DNA of 64,000 nt from NCBI RefSeq assembly GCF_052425735.1, contig NC_135761.1:24118001-24182000 (forward strand). Reading direction: 5' to 3'. Below the pieces are notes generated by a model. That model was not told the DNA's origin. It saw only the letters and a program-made list of their open reading frames with translations, and searched no databases. Both the position numbers and the translations under genes were made by a program. Below are positions 13,469 to 63,513 of the stretch, one piece after another. How positions within the stretch are numbered: position 1 is the stretch's first letter; each line of letters starts with the position of its first letter. Origin of the DNA: Oculina patagonica. Its lineage: Eukaryota.

Positions 13469-13620
13469 NNNNNNNNNNNNNNNNNNNNNNNNNNNNNNNN
13501 NNNNNNNNNNNNNNNNNNNNNNNNNNNNNNNNNNNNNNNNNNNNNNNNNNNNNNNNNNNNNNNNNNNNNNNNNNNNNNNNNNNNNNNNNNNNNNNNNNNN
13601 NNNNNNNNNNNNNNNNNNNN
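13469..13620. other. Assembly gap
   Basis: Run of N. Confidence 1.
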
Positions 13621-31280: not shown

Positions 31281-34200
31281 TTACCTGCTAGTGGAGAACT
31301 CCTCGAATGTCGTATCCATTGGCTCCATTTCAAACTGCTCATCTTCATCAGACTGGTATTGTGCACTTGACGTAATTAAAGAGAAGATAATTAGCATGTG
31401 TTAATGTGTTGTTAACGCACTACCAACCCCCAAGAACCCTCCGATCATCACACTCTTCACGCCAGCCTTAACCCTGTCAAATTCCACCTTAAGTCGTATG
31501 GGTCTCGAGCTTTTGCTGTTTCGTCGCCTGAACTCTGGAACAGTCTACCTTTTTTTATCCGCTCATGTGACAATTTAAGTTCTTTTAAATCAAAACTCAA
31601 AACTTATCTTTTTAAAAAAAGTTATTACTCTTAGCGATTTTTACTTTTTATTACTTTTAATGTACATTAATTTTTAAGATTTATTCAGCTAATTTTAACG
31701 AATTTTTATAGATTTGTAAAGCGCCTAGAGCAGGCCTGGATAGGCGCTATAAAAATGTTTATTATTATTATTTATTATTATGTGGACTCAGATTAGGTTC
31801 ACTGTTGCGTTACACACAGAAAGTACTGTCAAATGTAGCATGGGGCTAGTGGACTTTCCTGTTGGGCAAGTAGTTTTTATCCATCTCTTGCCCTATCACA
31901 AGTAACTTTTTTGAACATTTTTGTTGACAGAGAAAGGCCTTAGGTCTAGCATACAATGTACAATGACTCAAACTTGTACTAAGGCAACCATAATCTCTAC
32001 CATGTTTTTGGTCAAATAAAAGTGCTCACCTTGTTGCCCTACACGTGAAGAACAAGATTCTTTTCATCTTCTTATTGTAGAAGAAATAGTTGAAGGACCA
32101 AAGACTTCCTTCTTCGCCATATGGGTCTGAGTCAAGATCAGGGTTATAACTGAGTAAAACAAAAAGAAAACATTTCCCAAAGTGAATAAAAACTCTACTA
32201 AGTGCATGTACAAAGTCACAAATCTGTTTTCATTATATAAACATCAGTGAAATACCAGGAAATCTTTTGCACGAAAAAATCATATCTTCACACGTGAAAA
32301 TAACATGTTATTTTCACATGTGAAGATATGGATTTCGGAACATTTTCTGACAAGTCTGCCCTGTTTCAATGCTGAATAAGCCAAAGAAAGTCGATATTAA
32401 GTCGAAACATCATCGGATTTTCCTTGGCAATCTTTGGTAATCTTTGGATATCTTCGGAAATTTTCGGAAAAGTTCGAAAATGTTCAGAAACATTCGTACG
32501 ACCTTCGGACAACATTTTGAAAATCTTCGGAAATTTTCCAAAAATGGTCGGAAATCTTCGAAAAATCGTCAAAAACATCGTAATTAGTAGGTTTAAATAA
32601 TAAACAGAATATTACATGGTTGCTTGGAGATATGAAATTTATCTTCTCGTGTTCAAATCGATATTTTCACTCGTTCACTGCGCTCACTCGTGAGATATCG
32701 ATTTGTACACTCGAAGATAAATTTCATATCTCCGCGCAACCATGTAATATCCTCTATGTACATACTGTGTAAATGTTTACTAGATGTACATGTAGTTACA
32801 TGGTTTGAATGTAGTCATCATTCTTCAGATTGGATACTGTGTTAATGGCAAACTGCGTACATGTATACAGCATTACACAAGCATGGACATTTTGTATTAA
32901 ACCTTAAAATTAATAGAAAGAATTTTTCAAAAAACAACAACAACAAAGAAAACTTATAACTAGAGTGATTTTTGATTGAGTGTTGTAAAACTAAAACCAA
33001 AGTAATTGCTCTGGCGTGTCACAAAGGACATAGGCAATCTAGTGAACCAATTAAAAGTCAAAGCAAATACACGTAGGTGATGTGAAGTACTGGAAAATGT
33101 ATGCGGGTGAGTCATGGTTGGTTTAAGTTCTGATGTTGAAAAAGTAATTAAAAGCAAATATTTCTAACCCATTACTATTTGCATAATAATGCAAAACCAA
33201 ACCAAACATGAAATGCTTTCGACATTCAAGTGTAATCGCTCTATTGCAATGCATAACAAAAATTAAATATGGACCTTACCTGAATATGTCACATTCTGCC
33301 AGATTGATCTCCTCATCAATAGCAGCCCACAATCCAGATTTGAGAGCAACAAATGACTCACCACTAATTGCCAACAAATTCCCATTGATTGCATCAACAA
33401 CCACTTGAAGGCTCGGTTCACGAGAAAATTCATGCGACTTGACATTACTGAAGTCATAGTCTGGGTTAAATGATGCATTAAGGGTGGAAATCAAGTAAAA
33501 TAACATCTTGCGACTGATTGTGTCGCACAGAACTGCTTCATCTTGACTTCCTGTACTTAAGCTTCTCTGCCGAGCATTTGCAAGGATTCCTGGGTAGCTA
33601 CTGTTGGTAGGTGATATACTTCCAGGGATTGTGGTTTGAGGAGGCGACAATGCCTGAAGTTCATTGGGTGCACTGCCTTCATTTAAGGTTTTGTATAGCT
33701 TCTTGTCACTGCCAGCCATCTTGCAAGAGTAACTTTCAATTCTAAAAGTTTAAAAATAATAGTTTTTCAGTTAAAGTGATTAATGACTGTTTTACCATTG
33801 ATTTTAATTAGTACTTTTTCAGTTTGGACTGTTTTTGGACAAGGGAAAGCTTTTCAAACAACGATCGCAAAGCTTATCGGTTGAATGTGGGCCTTTAAGA
33901 ACATCAAATTTTCATGGGACAACTATCAACTGATTATAGTGTGTATTGGGGACAACATACAGTCAAAGCTAGTTGTTTCTGTTGTCTAGAAAACCATTTT
34001 TGGTTGGATTGAGTTTTCACCTGGCATCGGCAAACTTGGTTGAAGCTTACTGATAGCAAGAACAATTTCGTAAACCATTATCAGTTGAAAAAAATAATAA
34101 ATATGATATTCAATATTCTTACAGCCAAAACAACAGAAAATGTTTGTCCTCAGTGGAAAAGATGTGGTTTGAACACAACAGAAAACCACACAGGAAACCA

Positions 34201-46431: not shown

Positions 46432-47100
46432 TCACTTCTCCAAGGGGCTGATCTTCAGAACTCTCCCTGGCAGCTTGGACACTTGGGATAACAGGCTAAC
46501 GTACTTTCCCTTGAAGAAATCTCGTTCCCGCGAGGTGGCAGCCAGCTGTCGTTGCAGTTGTTCCAGCTCTTTCACTAAATTATCCCTTGTAACTTCAAGA
46601 CTGTTCTTATTTTCGATTCTTCGCATTCTGGAATGCTGTGCATAGCCTCTATTTTTCAATGTTCTTCGTCGTTGCTTCACTCGTGCGATCTCTTCTTTTG
46701 ACAGCCCTCTGAGTTTTAGGAGGCTGTTGATCTCTTTAACACCGAGCTCTCGCAGCTCTTTGTCGGTAAACAGAGCTTCTTTGGCACTCATTTCTTGGGG
46801 GAAAAAGTATCCGGTGCTTGTGGAGCTGCTTTCGGAAGGAGATGGGCTCGTGTTTGATCGCTCTGAAGCTTTATCGTCTTCATAGAGTTGTTGCGGCGGG
46901 AAAGTCTCGCTGAGCCATGCGGGCATTCCGTTGAGGTCCAGGGTTGATTCTGGAACACTTTGCGCGCTTTCTTCTTTTTCCTCTGAGGGAAACCAGAGAT
47001 TAGGGACAGGTCTGTCATATATCAATGTTAGCGACGAAGGGATCGTGATCACTAAAGGTGGATTAGAGGTCTCGTTGTTGCTAATGTTTGTGGGCATCAT
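46432..47100 (-). CDS. MAF: Maf-family bZIP transcription factor (large-Maf-like), intronless, 222 aa
   Basis: Extended homology region [43 protein letters not shown] followed by a leucine zipper; S/P/E-rich N-terminus. Confidence 0.92.
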
Positions 47101-49844: not shown

Positions 49845-50130
49845 CAAGCCGGCGCATTTTCCGGTTTCCCAAGCACTCAGTGACGAGGAGTATTTCTACT
49901 TCTCCCTACATGGGAATGTCCATTGAAGGATTACTTCCAGCATTAAATTCACCCATAGTCCTCTACTAACTATGATTCGCCGGTGCTCATTTATACTGTT
50001 ACACCTGGGTGGAGAGAGGCACTATGCGAGTTAAGTGTCTTGCCCAAAACAGAAAGCAGTGACCCCCGACCTGGGCTCAAACCAGGACCGCTCGATCTGG
50101 AGTTCAGCGCGCTAACCACAAGGCCACTGC
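49845..50130 (-). mobile_element. tRNA-derived SINE copy
   Basis: cacctgggtggagagaggcact...gagttaagtgtcttgccc...gcgcgctaacca, matching 24851-25152. Confidence 0.8.
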
Positions 50131-50616: not shown

Positions 50617-51666
50617 ATGTCTTCGAACACTGTTCCTTCATTTCCAATCGGCCAGGTTATCGTCGTTGAAGGAATCGAGCTCGAGATACAAAGACAACTT
50701 GGTAGTGGTGCTTTTGGCGTTGTATTCAAGGCAAGAGACCTGCTCGCTAGCGACAACGTTTTTTACGCTTTGAAAGATGTTGTGTGTCTGAATTCGTCGT
50801 CCATTGGCAAGGCAATCAGCGAAGTTGAAACTCTTCGTCGGGTGAATCACGACTTTATAGTTAAAATCATCGCGGCTGATCAGTTTGAAGACTCACGTGG
50901 GGGATTTCACGTGCTGATTTTGACTGAATACTGCTCGGGTGGTACACTGAACGATAGGTTATCGCAACCGAGTAGCGAGGAGAAAACCCTTAAATGGTTG
51001 AGCCAAATGGCAAGTGCTTTGAGCTATCTACACTCGCGCCAAATCGTTCACCGTGATTTAAAACCAGACAACGTCTTGCTCAGCGATTCCACGAGCGAGG
51101 ACTTGAAGCTTGGCGATTTTGGCTTGGCAAGAGAGTTTATGGCGTTGAAAAGGGTGGATTCAAACTGTTCAAGAATCGGTTTAGCTCAGTACTACATGCG
51201 TTCGGGGACAGGCCCTGCTCATTGGATGGCCCCAGAGGTCTTCACTTGCCGCTATACAGAAAAAGCCGACGTTTTTTCTTTGGGGGTGTTATTCAACGCG
51301 ATTCTTGTACGAGACTTTGCTTTCTCTGGCAACGAGAAGCGATGGTATGGCGCATTTGTGAAAGTCTCAGGGCAGGTTAAAATTGGCCTTGGTTACGCCA
51401 TGGCGGTACTCGGCCCTGCTGCCATGACGGAGTTTACTCACGATTATCTGCTGAACGAGGAGAATGGATTCCGAAGTTTGATCTTAGATACTTTGAATTA
51501 TGTCCCACACGAAAGGCCAAGAGCGGAGGAAATCTACTACAGATTAGAGGAGATTGCTACTAGTATTCGCCTTCAATGGTCAGGCGAAGAAAATCTTCAC
51601 GCTAGGCGCACAAAGAGGGAAAAAAAGCGCCGGTCAAGAATTAGAAACAAGTGTTCTATTGCCTAG
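50617..51666 (+). CDS. Protein kinase K1, PDIK1L/STK35-like, intronless, 349 aa, with polybasic + CaaX tail
   Basis: GSGAFG, ALK, HRDLKPDN, DFG, WMAPE, YTEKADVFSLG; ends RRTKREKKRRSRIRNKCSIA*. First ATG at 50617. Confidence 0.92.
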   Translation: MSSNTVPSFPIGQVIVVEGIELEIQRQLGSGAFGVVFKARDLLASDNVFYALKDVVCLNSSSIGKAISEVETLRRVNHDFIVKIIAADQFEDSRGGFHVLILTEYCSGGTLNDRLSQPSSEEKTLKWLSQMASALSYLHSRQIVHRDLKPDNVLLSDSTSEDLKLGDFGLAREFMALKRVDSNCSRIGLAQYYMRSGTGPAHWMAPEVFTCRYTEKADVFSLGVLFNAILVRDFAFSGNEKRWYGAFVKVSGQVKIGLGYAMAVLGPAAMTEFTHDYLLNEENGFRSLILDTLNYVPHERPRAEEIYYRLEEIATSIRLQWSGEENLHARRTKREKKRRSRIRNKCSIA

Positions 51667-52528
51667 ACAGTTTGAAGTTTTTAAATCAAATGAACCGCAG
51701 ATTAAAGGGCGAGCCAATATAACCAATTGCAAACACAGTCGCCTGCATGTATATAATTTTTTATCTGCGGTTATTGCCAACAATACTAAGATTTACTGTT
51801 GTATAGCTTTTTATTATCAATTATAATTGTACAATTCCCGTCTAAGTTCTAATATACTTGATTACACATGCCGAATTGTTTTCAAATCAAAGGAAATGTA
51901 AAAAATATTGGTTTAAAATTTTCTATAACCGGAAGAGTAATATTGAAAGCTTTATAGCAAGCGTGGATATCTGTATCTTTTGAGGAAGATTTTAAAAACA
52001 AATTGCAAAGTAAACCCCGAGCTTGATTTCATTGGAGAGGACAGAGTATTTGAAAGAACGGTGACAGTTCTTGGGTAAAGGTATGGCGTAGTATTCCCCG
52101 TTTGGCGTTAGTCGGCGGCAAGCATTGTCGGTTTGTGGGAAGGCCAGAGACAATATGTCGGGTGGGTGTATGTAAGGCTAAACTGGGAGAACATTAGTAT
52201 GAGAGTGCAACAGTGAAAACGCAACTATATTGCCATTTAGTTTCGTGAGGGTTTGTTTAATCGTTACTTTCGAGTCGTTACTTAAAGATGTACGCAAATT
52301 TAAGGTCGGATACTTCCTTAGAATGAAAAAGTACTAAATACATACAGGTAGTTTAGCACAATACAAATGTATTGTAGAGTCATTATATATTGCATGTGGT
52401 AAAAATATTCGCAGTTAAATTTTAACCAGTCTTTCCTACAAGTTTTTCGGTTGGTACAATCAAAACTTTGTGTGTGGTTTATGGACATTTTTTGAATTTA
52501 TGGTGATTATTCTGCTACTTACAACCAT

Positions 52529-53658
52529 TTAAAGGTCAAATGAACAGAAATTTTGTTTTTTGTTATTTTTTGCCCATGTGTTTATTAAGAGCCAAATAAA
52601 CATATCCCAAAGTTTCAAAGCAATCGGCCATTACATCGAAGAGATATTGCAAGTTGAAAAATGCTTTTTTTAGGCTGTCATAATCGTAGAGTGCTCGGAA
52701 AAGTTGTCGGAAAATTGTCGGAAATAAAAACTTGTGACGTCATAATTGGTGTTTTTGAAGACGACCGCAGACCGATTCCGCAGACGGCACCTTAAATCTA
52801 AATAATTGTGTTTAGTAACATTTCAAGCAGTTATTTCGTTCTGTTCGGCCGTTTTTCAGTGGATTGATTGTTGGTTGTTGTTAAGAGAGGCTCATTTTTT
52901 TTAATAGAATAGCTAAAGCACAAAAATAGCTTAAAGTTTTGTTTGCTGTCGTTTTGCATGTCATGTGAGACAAAGGTTGAATGCACGCTGGTATGAAAAC
53001 AAATCAGGAATCTCTATTGTTCTTTCTCATTAGCATTTAACGTTAATGAGCAGAATTATCTGCACGCCCGTTAACTATGCACGTGCGTTTTGAATTTTGG
53101 TACAGTTCAAAGTTCTGCACGCGCGTTAACTATGCACGTGCGTTTTGAATTTTGGTACACTTCAAAGCCGTTCTCTGCCGAACAACAACGTGAAATGACG
53201 AAATTCTGCGTATTTTGGACAACGTCAGCCACGACGGCTAATTTTTGGTTTCTCTAATTTTTGCTTTCTTTAAATATTCAGCGGGAGCTTGTTCTTAAAG
53301 CGATAAATAAGCAGAATGCGTCCGGAAAGCTGCGAGATTCTCAAGTAAAATATAAATTCATTTTGCACCAGACGTTGTCATTGACAATGGCGTCGGTGCG
53401 GTCTGCGGAATCGGTCTGCGGTCGTCTTCAAAAACACCAATTATGTCGTCACAAACTCGTTCCATTCCTTCCATTTCAGTGCGCAGTCATTCAAAAACGT
53501 TTTCGTGAAGCCTTCGGAAATCTTCGTATTTTTTGCTGTAATTCACGCTTTAAGGCTCGGAAAGCAAAAATTGTTCTTAATTTTACTCAATAATGGATAG
53601 TTTTAGCGTTTGATTGGTTAAAATGGCATTTTGAAATTTCTGTTCATTTGACCTTCAA
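52529..53658. mobile_element. Kolobok-like non-autonomous transposon with nested inverted repeat
   Basis: TTAA|AGGTCAAATGAACAGAAATT...AATTTCTGTTCATTTGACCT|TCAA; inner IR of about 54 bp at 52732-52785 and 53401-53454; tandem duplication at 53059-53168. Confidence 0.8.
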
Positions 53659-54389
53659 CTAATGTGGAATAACCCTTATAATAACATATAATTACATCGC
53701 GCAAATTCAACATGCGTTTTCAAATGCGCGTTACAAACATATTGAAATAAACTTACAGTAATTATGAAGATTACATTGCATAGTTTCTTAATTTTAGGAC
53801 CATACTTGCCAGTGTTATATTGGAGGAAGGTTTTTCGATTGACTGTCAAAAGTAATACCGGGTATTGCGGTAGTTTTGGAAAAACCCTCGACATGTCCTA
53901 ACTAAGGGACCGGTTATTATTTAGAAGGGGTAGGGCATGTGCAAATAGGGAAGGCTATGTTCAAATTCTCCTGACCCTCCTCTTTTATGAAGCATTTTTT
54001 TTCTGCTGCCCCCCCCCCCCCCCCCCCTTACCCACTCACTCCCTTAAACCTCCCTACTATGCGTGCATAAATTTATTTATTTACCCACTTTTTCTCAGCA
54101 TAAAAATTATTGTCTCTGCCCCTATTTTCACCAGCCTCAATGACAGGTCCCTAATCGGGGGTACGCCACCTATTTCGAACTAATCAGGAACAAGAATAAA
54201 AAAACGCGATTTGGTTAACACTCGTTTCTACGCGCTTGACACCAGTTACATTTTATTACTTCGAATTTTGATTGGTCCGTTATGTTACTAGTTTGTTTTG
54301 TTTGGCCAGATTTGGTCACTTTGGTTCTGGTATTACGATTGTCAGAAAAACGCTCATACTTAGTCGTAGCTTAGCTAATAAGAGGCGTT

Positions 54390-55400
54390 CATTTTGTTTT
54401 TACCCCATAACCTTTAACTGAGCCAACCAAGTCATCAACTCAAGCAGATGCTTGATTATTTTTGTCGTACTCCTGCCACGAGGGCTATACCTTCACTGAG
54501 TGTTAGACCCATGAAGATGGCTGTGATTTTCTGAATTATATAACTTACTGTAAACCGGAGACTTGTAAACATTTTCTACAACAGGAATATCTATATAAAG
54601 GCATGGTAAATTGCTTTTTCAGCAAAACACGATAAAAGCACACTCCAGCATTATACAAAACAGCGAACCAAGAGAAATAAACTTCGGCTTTCTTCTTGTA
54701 AATAGGTTCTTATTTTTGTATCTATTGTAATGTTTGTAATGCGCATTTGATTATTTTATAGAAAATGCGCAATATAAATATTAAATATTATTATTATTAT
54801 TATTATTATTCTTGAAATCTCCAGAAAAAAAAATTAGTGGCCACGAGTTATATCGGGCCAATCCGAAGGTTCATGTATTAAACTGATATTCAACGATCCA
54901 CCGTTTCGATGAGCGTCGATTCGTTCAAGTGTGATCGATGTGCTCGCGAATCAGTCTAGAATAAGCTATTTTTTCGTCCTCTTCTGCTTTCGAGGGAACA
55001 TTTTCCGGCTTAATCGCATCGATCCATCCCGCGTAAGTGAAGGTGGCAAGAACTGTGGCAGTTTGACTCATTTAGTTCCAAATTATTTCTGAGTGTTAGG
55101 TCGAGCATAAAGCTCGCTTAACTATTTCTTTCATCGCTGCACTGACTCAAAAGCGATACCTGTATAATATGGCAGTATCCTTTGAAGAGCAATTGGTCTA
55201 CTTCTGTGGTGGTAAACGCGTTTTAGTTATAGATGTTGTTCAGTATTTTAGCCTAGCACATAGCATTTCGAAGAGCCGAAATATTCATACAAAGAACGTC
55301 TTTTGACGTGAAGTTCAAGGTATGGAAGTTGCCTTGTCTACTACCCTACAAGGAACAGCAATAGCACCCTTACCAGGTCGAAAACGATTTACCCCAACTG
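54390..55400 (-). pseudogene. Decayed kinase copy psiA
   Basis: Reverse strand shows relics of the paralogues: catalytic-loop-like attaagccggaaaatgtt, the GPI/APE region and the KAEV..SLGSLF..MLECAFI region, broken by frameshifts. It is split by a LINE-tail insertion at about 54700-54810. Confidence 0.7.
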
Positions 55401-55573
55401 CAACTTCTTTTGAAAGATTTTAAGAAAATTAATGAATTGAATTGATGATTTTTTTTACTTCGACCTTTTCCCACTGTTTACGACTGAGAACATTAGGCAA
55501 GCATCGCGGCTTCGAAACCGAAGGTCAATTTCTTGTCAAACCCTGTTGTTTGCTCAGCCGCGTGACGTTTGCA

Positions 55574-57031
55574 TTAATAATAATAATGATATAATAATAA
55601 TAATGATAATGATAGTAACGATAATGACGATGATGATGATGTTGATACTACTACTAATAATGATAATAATGATAATGATAATTCAAAAAAATAATAATAA
55701 CAATGATATAATAATAAGAATAATGATAAGGATAATGATAATAATGATAAAAATAATGATGCTAATAATAATACTATTGACAATCCAAGAAAAAATAGGG
55801 ATAATAATACCAATAAATAATAATAAAGATAATTATAATGATAATAAAAGAAAATAATAACAAAAACACAATGTAAAAAACAATGCTGCTGCTCTTGTTG
55901 TTCGGGCAAGTGCTGCTGCGGTTGTCGAGGAAAGAAAAGTCGAGAAAAGTGGTGCTGCAGTTGTTGAGGAAGGATCTCCCGCTGTTGCCGGGGAAGGATT
56001 TGCTGCGGTTGTTGAGGAGCGATCTCCTCCTGTTGTCGAGGGACGGAATGTCGAGGAAAGGTCTGCTGTTGTTGGAGCAAGTGTTGTTGTTGTCGAATCG
56101 GACGAACTCTCTTGACTTTGTCATAAATTTCTTGAGCGCTTGGTCGATTATTTGGGTTGTGCTGCAAGGCCTCAAGAACGACGCTTCGCAGAGCGTTGGA
56201 CACTTGTGCATAGCTCGAGAATGCAATTCTGATACCACTATCGAAGTTTGCCATTGCAAGCCCAAAGCCAACTTTGCCTACACCAGGAATATCTGCAAAG
56301 GCACCGTAAATTGCTTTACCATCAATGATGATGAAATCCCGCTCAAGGATTGTATAAAACAGCGCACCAAGGGAAAACACGTCGGCTTTTTCTGTGTAAT
56401 GGTAAGTGTAAAATTCAGGTGCCACCCAGTGTATCGCGCCAACTCCTGAGCTCATGTAGTATTGCGAGTAACTGGTCAGCCATGAATCGTTGTACGGTTG
56501 AGCGTAGGATCGTTTGAGTGCGGTGTACTCTCGAGCCAGACCAAAGTCAGCCAATTTCACGTCCTCCGTTGCAGTCAGAAGCACATTATCCGCCTTCAAA
56601 TCGCGGTGTACTACACTGCGGGAATGGAGATAGCCAAGAGCTCCGGCTGTTTGAGTTATCCACTTCAAATTCATTTCTTCAGTACTCGGTCGAGCAAGAC
56701 GCTCGTTTAAACTTCCGCCGGAGCAGTACTCAGTCAAAAGCAACATGTGTAAAAGGCCTTGTGTATCACGGAACTGATCTGCTGCTATCATGGCGATCAC
56801 ATTCTCATGGGAGATGCTGTTCAGTGTTGTAGCCTCGCGGACAGCATTACGAAGCGCCGAGGCATTCAAACAAAGGACATCTTTTAATGCGTAGGCTGTG
56901 GACCAAAAAAAACCTGCCTCTTTTACTTTGTAGACGACACCAAAGGCGCCGTTGCCAAGTCGTTGTTGGATTCGAACTGTTTTGTTTCCAACTGAAACTC
57001 TTGATGGAAGAGTTACTGCGGCCTGATGCAT
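55574..57031 (-). CDS. Protein kinase K2, PDIK1L/STK35-like, with Q/P repeats and a microsatellite-encoded hydrophobic tail
   Basis: GNGAFG, ALK, HRDLKADN, DFG, HWVAPE. First ATG at 57031. The ORF stays open through the (ATT)n tract to 55574; the true C-terminus is uncertain. Confidence 0.88.
   Translation of the reverse strand: MHQAAVTLPSRVSVGNKTVRIQQRLGNGAFGVVYKVKEAGFFWSTAYALKDVLCLNASALRNAVREATTLNSISHENVIAMIAADQFRDTQGLLHMLLLTEYCSGGSLNERLARPSTEEMNLKWITQTAGALGYLHSRSVVHRDLKADNVLLTATEDVKLADFGLAREYTALKRSYAQPYNDSWLTSYSQYYMSSGVGAIHWVAPEFYTYHYTEKADVFSLGALFYTILERDFIIIDGKAIYGAFADIPGVGKVGFGLAMANFDSGIRIAFSSYAQVSNALRSVVLEALQHNPNNRPSAQEIYDKVKRVRPIRQQQHLLQQQQTFPRHSVPRQQEEIAPQQPQQILPRQQREILPQQLQHHFSRLFFPRQPQQHLPEQQEQQHCFLHCVFVIIFFYYHYNYLYYYLLVLLSLFFLGLSIVLLLASLFLSLLSLSLSLFLLLYHCYYYFFELSLSLLSLLVVVSTSSSSSLSLLSLSLLLLYHYYY
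55575..55862. repeat. Imperfect (AAT/GAT)n microsatellite
   Basis: About 290 bp of aat/gat triplets. Confidence 0.95.
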
Positions 57032-57590
57032 TGTATAAACTATTTTTCTCTCGTCGTAAAAAAGCAAAACGCGACAAGGCTTCGAAGCGGAGGATGGTTT
57101 CTCGGAAAAACCCTGTTTACCTGCTATGCCTGTATATGGTCAGAACGGCATTGTTATTATAGACATACTGTCAAGTTTGACGATCCCGCAGCTGCCATGA
57201 CAATAGCAAAACGGCTGTTTTCCTAGAAGTGGAAACCCCGTTTCGTTTAATCAGAAAGCAGCTGTCAAAAAAACCCGTGGAAGCTTCGCCTCTCGAAAAT
57301 TCTTGCTCCCGGATTTCAGCTTTTTTGCAATACATTGCTAGACAAAAACAGAGCTTAAAACGTGCTAAAAACAACTATGTTTGAATGTTTTGGCAGTGGG
57401 TTCAAACCTGTGAAAAAACATTCTGCCGAAGAAAAACAAACACAGAAAAGTTGAAGAAATTCAATCAAAAGGGCTCAGCAGGTATGTTAGTAAATTTATC
57501 GTAAGTGTGACAAAAACAGATGTCTAAGACTACAAACCATCAAGCCTTCGAGAGTTGTTTTCAAGGTTTCAGCAGGGATTGATAAGAACG
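57032..57590. promoter_or_regulatory. K2 upstream region, duplicate of the K3 upstream region (62220-62770), with GAS-type sites
   Basis: Colinear similarity to 62220-62770; TTCTCGGAA (57099), TTCCTAGAA (57220), TGTTTAC (57114). Confidence 0.7.
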
Positions 57591-57878
57591 CAAATACTCA
57601 GCGAATATTATCGAAAACATTGTGTTTGATCAAGCATATCGTGAATGAAAAGTATACGCAAGTATCTTATACCTACATCACCTTTATGTTACCTCGGATT
57701 TACAAGAGAATCTACAGAAGCTAGTTTATTCGAGAAAGAGAAAAAGAAAAAATAAATAAAATAATAATATATATATTTTTTAATATTATGATGTTTCGCT
57801 GAACGACGTATTTTCTTTCCAGAATTGCAAAAAAGATCACACACCCGCCTTTTTAGTGTAGATTAATAGCCGCTGAAA

Positions 57879-58180
57879 GGCGCGGGGCCTAACGGTTAGC
57901 GCGCTCGACTCCGAGTCGAACGGCCCGGGTTCGAGGCCTGGCAGGGGTGCTGCATTGTGTTCTTGGGCAAGACACTTTACACTCAAAGTGCCTCTCTCCA
58001 CCCCGGTGTATAAATGGGTACCGGCGAATTTACTGCTGGTGGGTAACTCTGCGATGGACAAGCATCCCATTCAGGGGGGAGTAGCAATACTCCTAGTCGC
58101 TTTAAAATGCTATGGAAACCGGGATAAGCTTCCGGCTGTATGGGCCACTTTGCTCGGACACAGACTTTACCTTACCTTTT
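57879..58180 (+). mobile_element. tRNA-derived SINE, full length
   Basis: A and B boxes; highly similar to 24851-25152; tttacc tail. Confidence 0.9.
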
Positions 58181-58189
58181 AATGGCCGC

Positions 58190-58700
58190 TGAACACCTCA
58201 GGAGCATTTCAGAATAGTGTGCCAGCCAATGTGCCCATGTACTGCTCGTTCGCGAGATCTGCGTTCTTGAGTGTCTTGAGTTCGACACTCGTGCCAGACC
58301 AAAGTTTGCCAACTTTGCATCTTCTGTGTTTGTGAGCAAAACATTTCTAGTTTTAAGTCACGGTGGACGATGCCTTTCTTGTGGGGTACCTCAAAGCATC
58401 TGCAATTTGTCTCATCCTCTTCAGGCTCATTTTGTAACAGTTTTACTGCTCTTCGTGTTAAGTGCTCGTTTAGACTTTCACTGACACACAACTCAGTTAA
58501 AATTAAAAAGTGTTTTGGCCAGATTTTTCTCTAAACGTGCAACGCCCAGGATGGCGATAACGTTGTTGTGGCTGACTACTTTGCGGAGGGTCTCGGCCTC
58601 ACTAAGTGCGTTATTAAGACCGCTTTCGTTTTCACAATGAATTTTCTTTAGGGCGATCACTTCCGAGCTAGCTTGGTCGTTGAGTTTGCACACGACAATA
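58190..58700 (-). pseudogene. Decayed kinase copy psiB
   Basis: Frameshifted pieces IALKKIHCENESGLNNALSEAETLRKV, SLNEHL, GIVHRDLK, ANFGLA. Confidence 0.75.
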
Positions 58701-58769
58701 TTCTCAAAGCAAAAGAGAAAATATTTAGCTACGAACCACAGAGCTATAAGAAGCGAGTTTTGAAGTTTC

Positions 58770-59730
58770 ATTTTGTTCCTGCCCTGTATTGGCAGACATG
58801 AAGAGGTAAAAGAACTATTTTTACTTACCTTTCCTCATAACCTTCAACTGAGGGCACCAATTCCTCAAGTTTAATTAGCTCTTGGTTGATTAATTTTGTC
58901 TTACTCCAGGTCACGAGGGCTATATCTTCGCCGAGCGTTGGACCCATGTAGATGGTTTGTGAATTTCTGGATCATATTTACCATTGTAAACCGGAAGCTT
59001 ACGTTTCCTAAAACAGGAATACATATGAAGGCATAGTAAATTGCTTTTTCATCAAATCATGATAAAGTCGCACTCTAGCATTGTACAAAACAGCACGCCA
59101 AGGGAAAACCTGCCACCAAGTATCGGGCCAGTCCCTGAGTTCATGCAGTATTGTGTGTAAACTGATATTCAACGAACGTTTGTTACGTGTGATGTACTCA
59201 CGAATCCGTCCAGTTGGCACAAACTGAGGCAACTTGACTCGTCCACTACCAGATTCAGTAATTCTCGAGTACGGAACTGTCTCAAAAACGATACTTGTAT
59301 AAAACGACCTCGAGTATCGACGAATTCGTCTGAACCTATGACGGTTATCACGTTTTAGGTACAGAGTTTTTTCCGTGTTTTATCCTTTGTAGCACATGCA
59401 CAACATTAGAAAGAGGCGAAGCATTCAAACAAAGATCATTGTTTGACGTGTAGACCTGCCTCGTCTATTACTTTGTAAGCAACATCAAACGAGTACTAGT
59501 CACCAAGTCGCTAACGTTTTTACCTCAATAACTGCATATCCTTTAGGAGTATTCACAAAGGCTTGCTGAATTGTATCAATGTTTTTCTGTTGCCTTCTCG
59601 CGCTGTTTACGAGCTGTTTACGGGCCAGTCCCTGAGTTCGTGCAGTATTGTGTGTAAACTGATATTCAACGAACCCTCGTTTTGCTGAGCGTCTGTTACG
59701 TGTGATGTACTCACGAATTAGTCCAGTTGC
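58770..59730 (-). pseudogene. Decayed kinase copy psiC with internal duplication
   Basis: Aligns to psiA and to K2/K3 (ttccccttggcgtgctgttttgtacaatgctagagtgcgactttatc-like, gatctttgtttgaatgcttcg). 59617-59730 duplicates 59124-59215. Confidence 0.7.
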
Positions 59731-60434
59731 TGAATTGTATCGATGTTTTTCTGTTGCCTTCCCGCGCTGTTTACGACAAGATATTAGGCAAGCGCGCACT
59801 GATAAAATCGCAAGTCAACCGTCACGGCTTCGAAACCGAAGGTCAATTTCTTGGAAAATCCTTCTGTTTGTTGAGTCGCGTGACTTTTAATCGGACGCGA
59901 ATACCGTATCGGACTTGTGAAATGAATATGTTTTTTTTTTGTTTTCAATTTTCAAAACAGTATATTGTTGTAATCAATCGCTCCTTTATTCTGTATCCTT
60001 TACAAAATGCCTATTCTGTGTTGGGATTTACAGCGCATTCATGTGACCTAAATAGTGTCTTTCTGTTAAATTTGGAATTATTACTGAATGAAGTTTACAA
60101 TAAGCGTTACAAAATTTGTTTCCAAGAAGTTTGAAATGCTCAATTCCACATTCTAAGAAACGGTTCTAAAATATTATCAAACATTGCTCAGTTTTAAAAT
60201 AGTCACGACACGAGTGAAATGCATTCTTATAATTGGGGGAAATGTCTGAGACAACTTTTCCCAAACTTGTTACTTCAAACTTCTTTCTACTTCTTCTTTC
60301 TACTTTGAAAAATTATATACCTGAAGCCTGAAAAAGGTACCCCTTTCGGGCGGAGCCTCCCCGTATAGGCCATTATAGGGAGTACTCCCCCCCCCGGGGG
60401 GTTTATTTACTCATTTACGAAACACAACAAGAAT

Positions 60435-60566
60435 NNNNNNNNNNNNNNNNNNNNNNNNNNNNNNNNNNNNNNNNNNNNNNNNNNNNNNNNNNNNNNNNNN
60501 NNNNNNNNNNNNNNNNNNNNNNNNNNNNNNNNNNNNNNNNNNNNNNNNNNNNNNNNNNNNNNNNNN
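60435..60566. other. Assembly gap
   Basis: Run of N. Confidence 1.
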
Positions 60567-61235
60567 CACCTTCAGATTAATGAAAAAACTCAACCACTTT
60601 TTCACAAGTATTCACAAGATGAATATTGCTGTATCAATATAATAAGCTCATCAGTAACACTTCTATTTAAGTATACATGTAAAGCATTCGACCACAACTA
60701 ATTCAATACAAAGTCGTATATAGTGTAAAATTAAAATGTTATATCAATGATAAAGTTTCATTTTGTTTCTGCCTTGTTGGCACACATTAGAAGCTTATTC
60801 GTGGTTTTCACTTGATGTCTTCAAAATTGTAAAATCCAAAATTGCAAGACCCCTGAATTTCTATCCTTCACTGGCTGTTAGACATCCTTAATAAATATAT
60901 TGTTAGCTCGATAGCACCAGCCGTACCCTCATCCTGTAATTTTAAACAATCTGAACAGTCGAGGTTTGGCGAGAAGTGGAACATTCTGAAGAATAGCTCG
61001 AGTACGGAGTACCGTACAGACTTGAAACAAGGACAAGTAGATTATCTAGTACTTGTCTACGACCTGTTGTATCCTTTATTGTTTTGGTCCAATAGTTTTG
61101 CATTAATTTTTCGCGGCATGACAGTTGTGTGACAATGAAAACCACCCATTACTGAAAATATTTTATACACATGAATTACGTCTCACTTTCCTAGAAACCT
61201 TTAAACGATCCGGTGCCCTGTTACCAATAGTGGGT

Positions 61236-62219
61236 TTAACAACACTCACCGGTACTTGACGAATCCCGCTGGCCATGTTGGAGCCTTATAGCTCGGCGAA
61301 TGTTCATCACCTTGTCATACACCTTTTGAGCACTTGGTCGGTCATCTGGGTCGTACTGCAAAGCCTTGAGAGCGACTCTTTGCAGAGCGTTGGACCCTTG
61401 TGCATAGCTTGAGAATGCAATTCGGATACGACGACCAACCTCCTTCATTGCAAGCCCAAGGCCAACCTTTCCTACCCCATGAATTTTTACAAAGGCGCCG
61501 TACATTGCTTTTCCGTCAACCACGATGAAATCCCGCTCAAGGATTGCGTAAAACAGCGTGCCAAGTGAAAATACATCGGCCTTTTCTGTGTAATGGCCAG
61601 TGAAAAATTCAGGTGCCACCCAGTGTATGGGGCCAATTCCTGAGCTCATGTAATATTGCGTGTAACTGGTAAGCCATGAACCGTCATCTTCTTGAGCGTA
61701 GGTTCGTTTGAGTGCGGTGTACTCTCGAGCCAGGCCAAAATCAGCCAACTTCACATCCAACGTTGCAGTCAGAAGCACATTATCCGCCTTTAAATCGCGA
61801 TGAACCACTCCGCGTGAGTGGAGATGGGCAAGAGCTGCGGATATTTGACTTATCCATTTCAAATTCATTTCTTCAGTACTCGGTCGATCAAGACGCTCGT
61901 TTAAACTTCCGCCTGAGCAGTACTCAGTCAAAAGCAACATGTGTAAAAGACCTTTCGAATCAAGGTACTTATCTGCTGCTATGATTTCGATCACATTCTT
62001 GTGAGAAATTTTGCTGAGTGTTCTAGCCTCGCGGACAGCATTATAAAGCTGCGAGTCATACAAACAAGGAACATCTTTTAATGCATAGATTGTGGAACTT
62101 GCCTTGTCTTTTACTTTGTAGACGACACCAAAAGCACCATTGCCAAGTCGCTGTTGGATTCTAACTGTTTTGTTGTTAACTGAAACTCTCGGTGGAAGAT
62201 TCAGAGCGGCCTGCTGCAT
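61236..62219 (-). CDS. Protein kinase K3, PDIK1L/STK35-like, intronless, 327 aa, ends in CC
   Basis: GNGAFG, ALK, HRDLKADN, DFG, GPIHWVAPE, YTEKADVFSLG..ILERDF; close paralogue of K2. First ATG at 62219. Confidence 0.92.
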   Translation of the reverse strand: MQQAALNLPPRVSVNNKTVRIQQRLGNGAFGVVYKVKDKASSTIYALKDVPCLYDSQLYNAVREARTLSKISHKNVIEIIAADKYLDSKGLLHMLLLTEYCSGGSLNERLDRPSTEEMNLKWISQISAALAHLHSRGVVHRDLKADNVLLTATLDVKLADFGLAREYTALKRTYAQEDDGSWLTSYTQYYMSSGIGPIHWVAPEFFTGHYTEKADVFSLGTLFYAILERDFIVVDGKAMYGAFVKIHGVGKVGLGLAMKEVGRRIRIAFSSYAQGSNALQRVALKALQYDPDDRPSAQKVYDKVMNIRRAIRLQHGQRDSSSTGECC

Positions 62220-62880
62220 TTTATTTGCTATTCTTCTCTCGTCGTAAAAAACAAAATGCAACAGAGCTTCAAAGTGGAGGACGGGTTCTCGGAAAAATCC
62301 TGTTTACCTGCTATTAAATTCGCACCATGCCCGTATATGGTCAGAAAGTCATTGTCATTTCAGACATACTATAAAGTTTTACGGTCCCAATACTAAAAAC
62401 AACTTTCCCAGAAGTGGAAAACCCGTTTCGTCCAATCAGAAAGCGGCTGTCAAAACAAATCAGTATTTTCAAACATGGTAGCTTTGTCGATGGCGCCAGC
62501 TTCTCGCTCTCCGGGGTTTTGGCTTTTTCGCAGTACATTTTTAGACAAATACGAGGTTAAAACGTGCTAAAGTAGGTTCAAACCTTTACATAAACCTACT
62601 TAAATAAACTACTTACCGCATTTCTGCTGAAGAAAACGAAAACAGAAAAACTGAGGAAATTCAACCAGAAGAGCTCAGCAGGTACGTTGGTGAATTTTTT
62701 CTTAGAGATGGCCAAGAATACGAACCATCAAGCCTTCAAGATTTGTTTTCACGGTTTCAATGGGTACGATTAAGGACATTAGCTAAGCGCGCATAAAATC
62801 GCAAGTCAAGCGTCACGGCTTTGAAACCGAAGGTCAATTTCTTAGAAAACCTGTTGTTTGCTCAGTCGCGTGACTTGTGC
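62220..62880. promoter_or_regulatory. Divergent promoter between K3 and the LicD-family gene
   Basis: TTCTCGGAA (62286), TTCCCAGAA (62405), CCAAT (62432), TTCTTAGAA (62839); plus-strand donor CAG|GTACGT at about 62681. Confidence 0.6.
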
Positions 62881-63513
62881 ATAGCAATGTCCTCGTTTCC
62901 GATTTCGTCTGTGGACGAAAAAGCCGCCGAGTCATATCATCGAAAGCGTCTCGCTGTTCTTATATTTGTTGAATTGTAGTTATTTATCGTTTCCAAGAGA
63001 AACATTTAACCTTGACAGAAGATGATATAAGTTCAGTTTCATTAGCATGCCCTACCGCCTCCCCCGCCGGAAGTATTGCAACCGAATTTAGAGAAGGGAA
63101 AGCACTATCAGACATTTCCCCCAAATATAAGAATGCATTTCACTCCTGTCATGACTATTTTAGAGAAGATAGCTGTCTTTCTTCATGTCCTTTAATCAGA
63201 TTACAAAGTGAACATGCCAGCCATTCCGCCCCCTTTCATAGAACTACTTCGCTTAGGTTAAACTGAAATCCCCCAATCTTTTAACAATAAACAAATTCTA
63301 TGACAAAAACTGTCAGACAAGCATTTGCTAAAACAATAATTTCATTCGCCCTCGATGGACATGTCAATGAGATGATCATAATCAACTCGCACTTCATGCT
63401 TTTTGATTATTTTGTCGCCTGATTTCCAACTCATGCTCATGGAATAATTGTAACATAATATGAAACAATTACGATATAATAATTGTCTGTATTATCATAC
63501 ATTCCACAGAGAT

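Follow-up and report, generated by a model that had tools for sequence, protein, structure and literature searches.

The GRKs are paralogous kinases that combine one catalytic core with different C-terminal membrane-anchoring devices. GRK1 is farnesylated, GRK7 geranylgeranylated, and GRK4 and GRK6 are palmitoylated, while GRK5 carries a basic amphipathic helix and GRK2 and GRK3 contain a PH domain. In K-Ras4B and the Rho proteins, a basic run beside the CaaX cysteine provides the second membrane signal. The soluble yeast kinases Yck1 and Yck2 are held on the plasma membrane by yet another device, a C-terminal Cys-Cys that is dually palmitoylated by the DHHC enzyme Akr1; a disordered linker lies between the kinase and the CC, and CK1-gamma is probably similar (PMC3145546, PMC2173492). 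On the side of the catalytic domain, Goyal et al. placed STK35 and PDIK1L together in New Kinase Family 4 (NKF4), found STK35L1 in the nucleus and nucleolus, and recognized no genuine invertebrate STK35/PDIK1L homologue except in Ciona (PMC2737284). Here we analyze three neighboring kinase open reading frames (ORFs), K1, K2 and K3, in a 64,000-nucleotide stretch of the coral Oculina patagonica (NC_135761.1, positions 24,118,001 to 24,182,000; hereafter the window, in which all positions are counted from its first letter; Table 1). We think it moderately probable that they are part of an array that evolves by birth and death, within a cnidarian kinase family whose paralogues are told apart by short, disordered C-terminal tails that would target them to membranes. 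The principle of such re-addressing is already known from the GRKs, from Yck/CK1-gamma and from the hypervariable regions of Ras and Rho proteins. The cnidarian family itself is undescribed, and full-text searches of the literature (STK35/PDIK1L in corals; "PDIK1L-like") gave no paper on it.

All three ORFs are complete and contain a full Pkinase domain (Pfam E values from 1e-43 to 1e-46). In a 48-sequence family alignment that includes K1, K2 and K3, the residues K53, E69, N152 and R300 and the HRD, DFG and APE motifs are invariant, and because of this the three proteins look like catalytically intact, active kinases. Identity is 74% between K2 and K3 (about 317 residues) and 50% between K1 and K3 over the kinase domain. 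C-terminal of this domain, the three sequences diverge wholly. The first-pass annotation, made from the letters of the window alone, had described three intact, intronless kinases with a common domain and different ends. The intact domains and the divergence were borne out, while in the public annotation only K1 is intronless. A run of Ns in this region (Table 1) lies outside all three ORFs, 670 nt 3' of the K3 stop and 3.4 kb 5' of the K2 ATG, and its position rules out that it breaks any of them.

The first-pass annotation had proposed to tabulate the C-termini of the family, and this was done over 188 aligned rows; a tree was computed for 137 rows from the kinase domain alone. The ending -CC is found in 67 of the 188 rows. 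It is followed by CaaX boxes without a basic run (31 rows, typically ...FWMTE..YCTIS or CTII past an acidic amphipathic stretch) and by polybasic CaaX boxes (30 rows). Smaller classes have a lone terminal Cys among the last 3 residues (9 rows), a Ser-rich tail ending in ...RQLLGRGK (7), a Q/P-rich tail (5) or an acidic tail with CaaX (1), and 38 rows are other or truncated. On the kinase-domain tree the tail class changes 42 times, compared with 77 changes expected from shuffles, and none of 200 shuffles was as low. Tail classes are thus linked to clades and yet change often. The -CC endings, present in 52 of the 137 tree rows, are clustered as well (0 of 500 shuffles as low). The tree contains a clade of 17 rows around K1 and a sister clade of 117 rows that holds K3. 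In this sister clade, -CC or a near variant (CCG, CSC) is the commonest ending and probably the ancestral one. Q/P-rich tails have at least four independent origins in the family.

The family is large in stony corals and reaches the Hydrozoa, where a Clytia hemisphaerica protein ends in CTIL, and its members differ mainly in their short C-terminal tails. RefSeq proteins end in ..TCC in Montipora foliosa, ..CCG in Acropora millepora, and ..CCIT and ..CAIM in Montipora capricornis. Searched with a profile, 1.84 billion cluster representatives gave 2,734 proteins at E <= 1e-30, and the single-domain matches include further -CC and CaaX endings, among them the polybasic ...RRRCIM. Four proteins (P0303, P0323, P0333 and also P0260) end in one hydrophobic segment of about 20-25 residues plus a few basic residues, so that a tail-anchor-like transmembrane design may exist in the wider family, of which K2 is not a convincing case. 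At the level of the family, the tabulation and the tree back the earlier idea of a kinase family that diversifies by swapping its tails. These comparisons support the view that one catalytic module has been re-addressed by exchanging short C-terminal membrane signals. For the single genes, the interpretation is well supported for K1; for K3 it is supported for the family and uncertain for the Oculina gene. What the data show directly are the sequences, their conservation, the tree, and where the ORFs agree or disagree with the public models; lipidation, localization and the set of K2 and K3 mRNA isoforms are inferred.

Two kinase domains within one product of 590-627 residues are seen in other corals (P0011, P0136-P0139). 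In the representative library, some giant products have as many as 15 stretches that match a kinase, and multi-domain examples include P0262, P0275 and P0395. Either these are true multi-kinase proteins, or gene calls have been fused across tandem arrays.

The public NCBI model of K1 from the same genome is the identical, intronless 349-residue protein with the same end. Among the 20 residues ahead of the CaaX cysteine, 11 are Lys or Arg and 1 is acidic; the box CSIA and the stop follow directly. The K1 clade, an old group of orthologues, is well supported on the maximum-likelihood tree, which uses kinase-domain columns only (support of 99 in the SH-like approximate likelihood-ratio test, SH-aLRT). 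Its named members come from Oculina, Orbicella faveolata, Pocillopora verrucosa, Pocillopora meandrina and Montipora capricornis, so that both major scleractinian lineages, robust and complex, are represented. Every one of the 17 rows ends in an exact C-terminal CaaX box with Cys at -4, I or L at a2, and A, S, T or C as X (CSIA, CTIS, CSIT, CLIS, CCIA, CSIS, CCIT, CSIC, CCIS and CVLA). The basic run ahead of the box is kept in all 17 as well, although it is weaker in P0013 (5 Lys/Arg). The RefSeq orthologue models in Orbicella, Pocillopora and Montipora end in the same way. Across the clade the tail drifts in sequence but stays constant in charge and in the place of its cysteine, a pattern that we take as evidence of selection acting on a signal. 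In a confident AlphaFold model of K1, built with the 48-sequence alignment (mean predicted local distance difference test score, pLDDT, 81.7), a long helix at residues 303-327 follows the kinase domain. Residues 326-349 have pLDDT values below 50 and are predicted to be disordered, as expected of a lipidation tail.

By the CaaX rules, in which an X of A, S, T, C, M or Q selects farnesyltransferase, K1 would be a substrate of this enzyme with a polybasic second signal of the K-Ras4B type, and its predicted destination is the inner leaflet of the plasma membrane. Farnesylation would be followed by cleavage of aaX and by methylation, after which the basic run could bind electrostatically to the acidic inner leaflet. 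With K-Ras4B, K1 has in common the Cys at -4, the aliphatic a2, a farnesyl-type X, the density of basic residues and the disordered tail. It differs in that a protein kinase and not a small GTPase carries the signal, and in that the prenylation of K1 is only predicted. The assignment of a K-Ras4B-type polybasic CaaX end to K1, made in the first-pass annotation, therefore holds for the public protein and across the whole clade. Most of the closer K1 orthologues also carry a Ser in basic context (RRS, HRS) about 10 residues ahead of the CaaX cysteine; in K1 it falls within tail positions 51619-51651, and the other examples are in the K1-clade proteins P0001-P0010. This Ser could serve as an electrostatic switch under the control of phosphorylation, comparable to Ser181 of K-Ras4B.

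The K3 ORF ends in ...SSSTGECC. Its nearest orthologues, from another coral, end in ...GSCC (P0074, P0186, P0187), and by comparison of the relatives the terminal -CC is to be regarded as a genuine, conserved feature of the family. A perfect 5' splice site, G/GTGAGT (the slash marks the cut), lies within the last codons of K3, ggt gag tgt tgt taa; the site is absent from both orthologous sequences that were read (ggc tgg tgt tgt taa in L001; ggt tcg tgt tgt tga in L003). The public K3 models XP_078367875.1 (367 residues) and KAL9976186.1 (425 residues) match the ORF for 323 residues and exit at exactly this site. Past the junction come about 33 residues that are all Glu or Asp, then a few others, and finally the end ...SCCVS. 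From the second coding exon only the last 5 codons and the stop are readable in the window, because the neighboring run of Ns would hold the acceptor and the approximately 114 coding nucleotides of the acidic run. An AATAAA (60407-60402) lies 8 nt after the CCVS stop. Directly after it on the minus strand, near the N run, there is a C6G9 run (60386-60401). KAL9976186.1 is extended further: from a donor TC/GTAAAT it passes to another exon (59691-59524) that lies in a decayed repeat unit, and this extension looks spurious. At the orthologous locus L003, which has a homologous 3' flank, no acidic run was found within 2.4 kb downstream of the stop, which argues that the acidic exon is young. A second AATAAA (61080-61075) is located 156 nt after the GECC stop and makes an unspliced K3 mRNA plausible. 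The 327-residue product of the ORF has no exact match in the protein collection.

Both possible ends of K3 bear a cysteine lipidation motif, CCVS being a CaaX box of the farnesyl type beside an acidic and not a basic stretch. The first-pass annotation had read GECC as a lipidation motif, which stands for the ORF and the orthologues, while both public models splice the -CC out. It had left open Rab-type prenylation or palmitoylation. Double geranylgeranylation of the Rab type requires a Rab fold that is recognized by the Rab escort protein. It is unlikely for the -CC of K3, where only kinase domains and no Rab fold were found, and Yck1/2 are the better precedent. By analogy with them, dual S-palmitoylation would be the most likely fate of a K3-type -CC. 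Like Yck1, Yck2 and CK1-gamma, the K3 ORF and dozens of its relatives combine a soluble kinase with a poorly conserved disordered linker and a terminal Cys-Cys. The linker of K3 is much shorter (about 20 residues), however, and in Oculina the CC codons overlap a splice donor. The K3 family is moreover unrelated to CK1: the best solved or reviewed matches of K3 are GCN2, CDPK, STK35/PDIK1L and NEK and not CK1, so that K3 is an analogue of Yck/CK1-gamma and not a member. It had also been foreseen that the idea of localization tails would fail if the Cys motifs were not conserved or if the transcripts were spliced to other 3' ends. The motifs are conserved in the relatives, and the public K3 models are indeed spliced to another 3' end.

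K2 is a different case. Residues 1-383, that is the kinase domain and a Q/P-rich tail, are 100% identical to Oculina patagonica ACROYT_G013452, and both public annotations contain the same 384-residue protein ending in ...QQHW. The remainder of the ORF reads through a degenerate repeat of period 3 (96 copies at 55575-55860 in Tandem Repeats Finder, TRF) with 56% T on the coding strand. It gives 102 residues composed of 35% L, 19% S, 15% Y and 10% F, with V also among the main residues. The three minus-strand frames through the repeat contain 0, 5 and 2 stops over about 108 codons. On the coding strand the TTA, TAT and ATT units are free of stop codons, and since this strand rarely makes stops, one open frame out of three is unremarkable (about a one-in-five chance). 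A pattern search found a single minus-strand acceptor that gives W and a stop, ttccttgtag/GGTAG at 55346/55345; the corresponding intron 55881-55346 would therefore take out the whole repeat. By exact look-up, the 485-residue read-through product is absent from the annotations and assemblies in the protein collection, and none of the relatives compared has a K2-like hydrophobic tail.

The 102 hydrophobic residues are thus most likely an accidental read-through of a microsatellite and not an evolved anchor. On the tree K2 belongs to the 11-row subclade of K3, in which 7 of 11 rows end in -CC, and because these keep it we conclude that K2 has lost it. K2 may have arisen as a duplicate from this subclade that lost -CC and acquired a tail from a Q/P minisatellite, and its hydrophobic part would exist since the frame through (TTA)n has no stops. 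The Q/P repeats described in the first-pass annotation are real, while the membrane anchor into which they were thought to run is a microsatellite that both public models splice out. At 55868-55885 (minus strand), where the public model exits the ORF, K2 reads TGT TTT TTA (C-F-L), two substitutions away from TGT TGT TAA. Point mutations could have cost K2 its stop and one Cys, so that it now reads into a former 3' untranslated region, but in this T-rich context the resemblance is only suggestive.

The DNA of the locus shows how these copies are related. K2 and K3 share homology (82% over 1175 nt) that begins about 540 nt upstream of the ATG and breaks off where the kinase domain ends (56115-57273 with 61309-62459, and 57300-57571 with 62501-62759). 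On the minus strand K3, relic A, relic B, K2 and relic C follow each other head to tail, and a short upstream element marks the units of K3, relic A and relic C. The K2 read-through ORF ends exactly at the start of the next unit, and the acceptor of the public K2 model lies inside this dead unit. K1, the older paralogue, is convergent with K2, whereas K2 and K3 are arranged head to tail. The description of the kinases as tandem paralogues was therefore correct in that they form a neighboring array, but a simple tandem it is not, with K1 in convergent orientation and three relics between or beside the genes. To judge from the decayed copies, which contain stops or an APE deletion, the array is under birth-and-death turnover. 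An inverted element is common to the region upstream of K1 (50000-50117) and the K2 unit (57894-58010), and an A-rich simple repeat is present at 57746-57790 between relic B and K2.

NCBI annotates the members of the family as STK35-like or PDIK1L-like. No PDB chain belongs to the same subfamily, and the best sequence matches there are GCN2, CDPKs and RSK. Among the reviewed AlphaFold models (afdb_swissprot), STK35/PDIK1L take ranks 1-3, 5 and 6 at 22-24% identity, and their lead over the NEKs is narrow (E 3e-19 vs 5e-18). In a protein language-model atlas, the nearest neighbors are a cnidarian "PDIK1L-like" cluster and chordate PDIK1L. STK35, STK35L1 and PDIK1L are thus the best reviewed structural matches of the coral kinases and the source of their NCBI names. 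The vertebrate proteins differ, however, in being nuclear and in having N-terminal extensions and no C-terminal tail. We consequently use "STK35/PDIK1L-like" as a label of nearest similarity and not as demonstrated membership in NKF4, and the sequences point to a remote kinship. The first-pass annotation had set the coral kinases against vertebrate STK35/PDIK1L as mainly nuclear proteins. The nuclear location is correct (PMC2737284), but at such low identity and with so small a lead over the NEKs the contrast carries little weight.

Several observations weigh against our interpretation of the tails and have to be set against alternatives for each gene. Many of the database proteins in the tabulation are automatic ORF or gene calls, and some of the tabulated ends may be wrong. 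For K1, the stretch KREKKRRSR resembles a nuclear localization signal (NLS). Basic run and CaaX box could then act as NLS plus farnesyl group and bring the kinase to the nucleus or the nuclear envelope instead of the plasma membrane. Lamins are farnesylated nuclear precedents, and LKB1 is both nuclear and farnesylated. The basic run of K1, however, directly adjoins the CaaX cysteine, just as the second membrane signal does in K-Ras4B and the Rho proteins. The nearest reviewed relatives by fold match, STK35/PDIK1L, are indeed nuclear (PMC2737284), but K1 shares only 22-24% identity with them, and the alignment leaves no more than 5 residues at the end of vertebrate PDIK1L, which has no comparable tail. 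We regard a nuclear destination of K1 as unlikely and the plasma membrane as the better prediction. For K3, both public models splice away the -CC, so that in Oculina this form may be minor or absent; among RNA-assembly protein fragments there is no near-identical one over the last 128 residues of the ORF, the best match being 81% identical. The spliced acidic CaaX form could be the sole mature product, with the GECC codons intronic and simply not yet decayed. The perfect donor, an intron common to two public annotations, and an acidic exon that ends in a CaaX box (unlikely by chance) shortly before an AATAAA speak for this. The ORF nevertheless still ends in the family-conserved -CC with an intact stop and its own AATAAA downstream, the closest orthologue locus is without the acidic exon, which makes the exon young, and the two public models disagree on what comes after it. 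We consider this alternative a serious one that nonetheless falls short of being probable. In our main reading, the last codons of Oculina K3 have acquired a consensus 5' splice site, which the public models connect with a lineage-specific acidic exon ending in CCVS. One may further speculate that K3 is a splice-controlled anchor switch, in which one gene makes two kinases with the same catalytic domain and different lipid anchors. The unspliced mRNA would give the palmitoylatable and hence reversible -GECC end, while use of the splice site would add a repeat-derived acidic stretch and the farnesyl-type CCVS. The acidic plasma membrane should repel such an acidic CaaX tail, and endomembranes would be favored. 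More broadly, the tails of the array would be renewed by exonization of microsatellites and minisatellites. We offer this switch as a doubtful proposal.

For K2, the donor T/GTTTTT (55882/55881) of the public model is weak, and because of this the QQHW end is not proven in our view; the model intron could be a device of the gene predictor to skip a masked repeat. Together with the frame that is open for 102 codons, this leaves room for a hydrophobic tail that is encoded by the microsatellite, translated and newly born as a membrane anchor, the more so as the wider family has members with a single tail-anchor-like hydrophobic end (P0303, P0323, P0333). The other two frames contain only a handful of stops, however, so that the open frame has the one-in-five chance given above. 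The tail moreover occurs in no relative, its product in no annotation or assembly, and both public models remove the repeat. A tail-anchored K2 was rejected on the same grounds and on its composition, since 102 residues of L/S/Y/F low complexity are not one segment of about 20 residues near the end. We hold a newly born anchor to be very improbable. K2 could otherwise be decaying into a pseudogene, with its lipid signal lost and its expression weak, like the three relics around it. It is flanked by these decayed copies, it lacks the -CC that most rows of its subclade retain, and in small RNA runs only 5-6% of its sampled words were found, compared with up to 20% for K3. Against this stands the kinase domain of K2, which is fully intact with every catalytic motif present, and the four separate origins of Q/P-rich tails on the tree suggest that such tails are tolerated or useful. 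Decay of K2 therefore appears rather unlikely to us, and we prefer to see it as an intact kinase with a Q/P tail and an accidental hydrophobic read-through.

If our interpretation is correct, corals possess a large and fast-evolving set of active kinases that differ mainly in the membrane site at which they work. This would be a natural experiment like that of the GRKs or the Ras hypervariable regions, but much more prolific and still turning over within one array. The GRKs are a different kinase family, and the coral paralogues are distinguished from them by lying in one tandem array and by the rapid turnover of their tails, in which repeat expansion and exon gain take part. An uncharacterized kinase family with a likely role in membrane-proximal signaling would thereby be flagged, and its short tails could serve as portable targeting tags for cnidarian cell biology. 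K2 and K3 also teach caution: a 3' intron or a repeat can overturn the reading of a C-terminal motif from an ORF in eukaryotic DNA.

Table 1. Features of the kinase array, in positions of the window.
Feature	Position	Strand	Description
K1	50617..51666	+	ORF, 349 residues; Pfam Pkinase E 1.2e-46
K1 tail, predicted disordered	51592..51663	+	polybasic stretch and CaaX box CSIA (51652-51663)
Kinase relic C	54568..55333	-	pseudogene with in-frame stops; tblastn; directly downstream of K2
Terminal mini-exon of the public K2 model (inferred)	55341..55345	-	GG + TAG, giving ...QQHW and stop; after ttccttgtag/GG
Unit-upstream element	62793..62882, 59802-59888, 55495-55574		self-blastn, 83-91% identity
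K2	55574-57031	-	ORF, 485 residues counted from first ATG; Pkinase domain complete
(TTA)n microsatellite	55574..55882	-	read in frame: 102 hydrophobic residues and stop; in the intron of the public K2 models
K2 residues 1-383	55883..57031	-	kinase domain and Q/P tail; 100% identical to 384-residue KAL9976184.1 / XP_078364000.1
K2 Q/P/R-rich tail	55883..56116	-	78 residues (Q25 P10 R9); 24/48-nt minisatellite (TRF 55953-56047)
Kinase relic B	58182..58696	-	pseudogene; tblastn 33% over 190 residues, E 3e-11; stop in APE region
Kinase relic A	59004..59510	-	pseudogene, APE region deleted; tblastn; DNA similar to relic C and K2
Alternative K3 terminal exon	60415..60434 (codons 60432-60415)	-	readable end SCCVS and stop; matches end of XP_078367875.1
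N run	60435..60566		132 Ns; would hold acidic run and acceptor of second exon of public K3 models
K3	61236..62219	-	ORF, 327 residues, end GECC and stop; residues 1-323 same as public models
5' splice site G/GTGAGT	61244..61250 (61250/61249-61244)	-	inside the G-E-C codons; exit of public K3 models

Outside the array, the window holds a second N run of 152 letters (13469-13620). A minus-strand ORF at 33279-33719 contains a segment of the RNA polymerase III regulator Maf1 (E 1e-33), and another at 46435-47100, also on the minus strand, contains a transcription factor domain of the bZIP_Maf type (E 3e-21).

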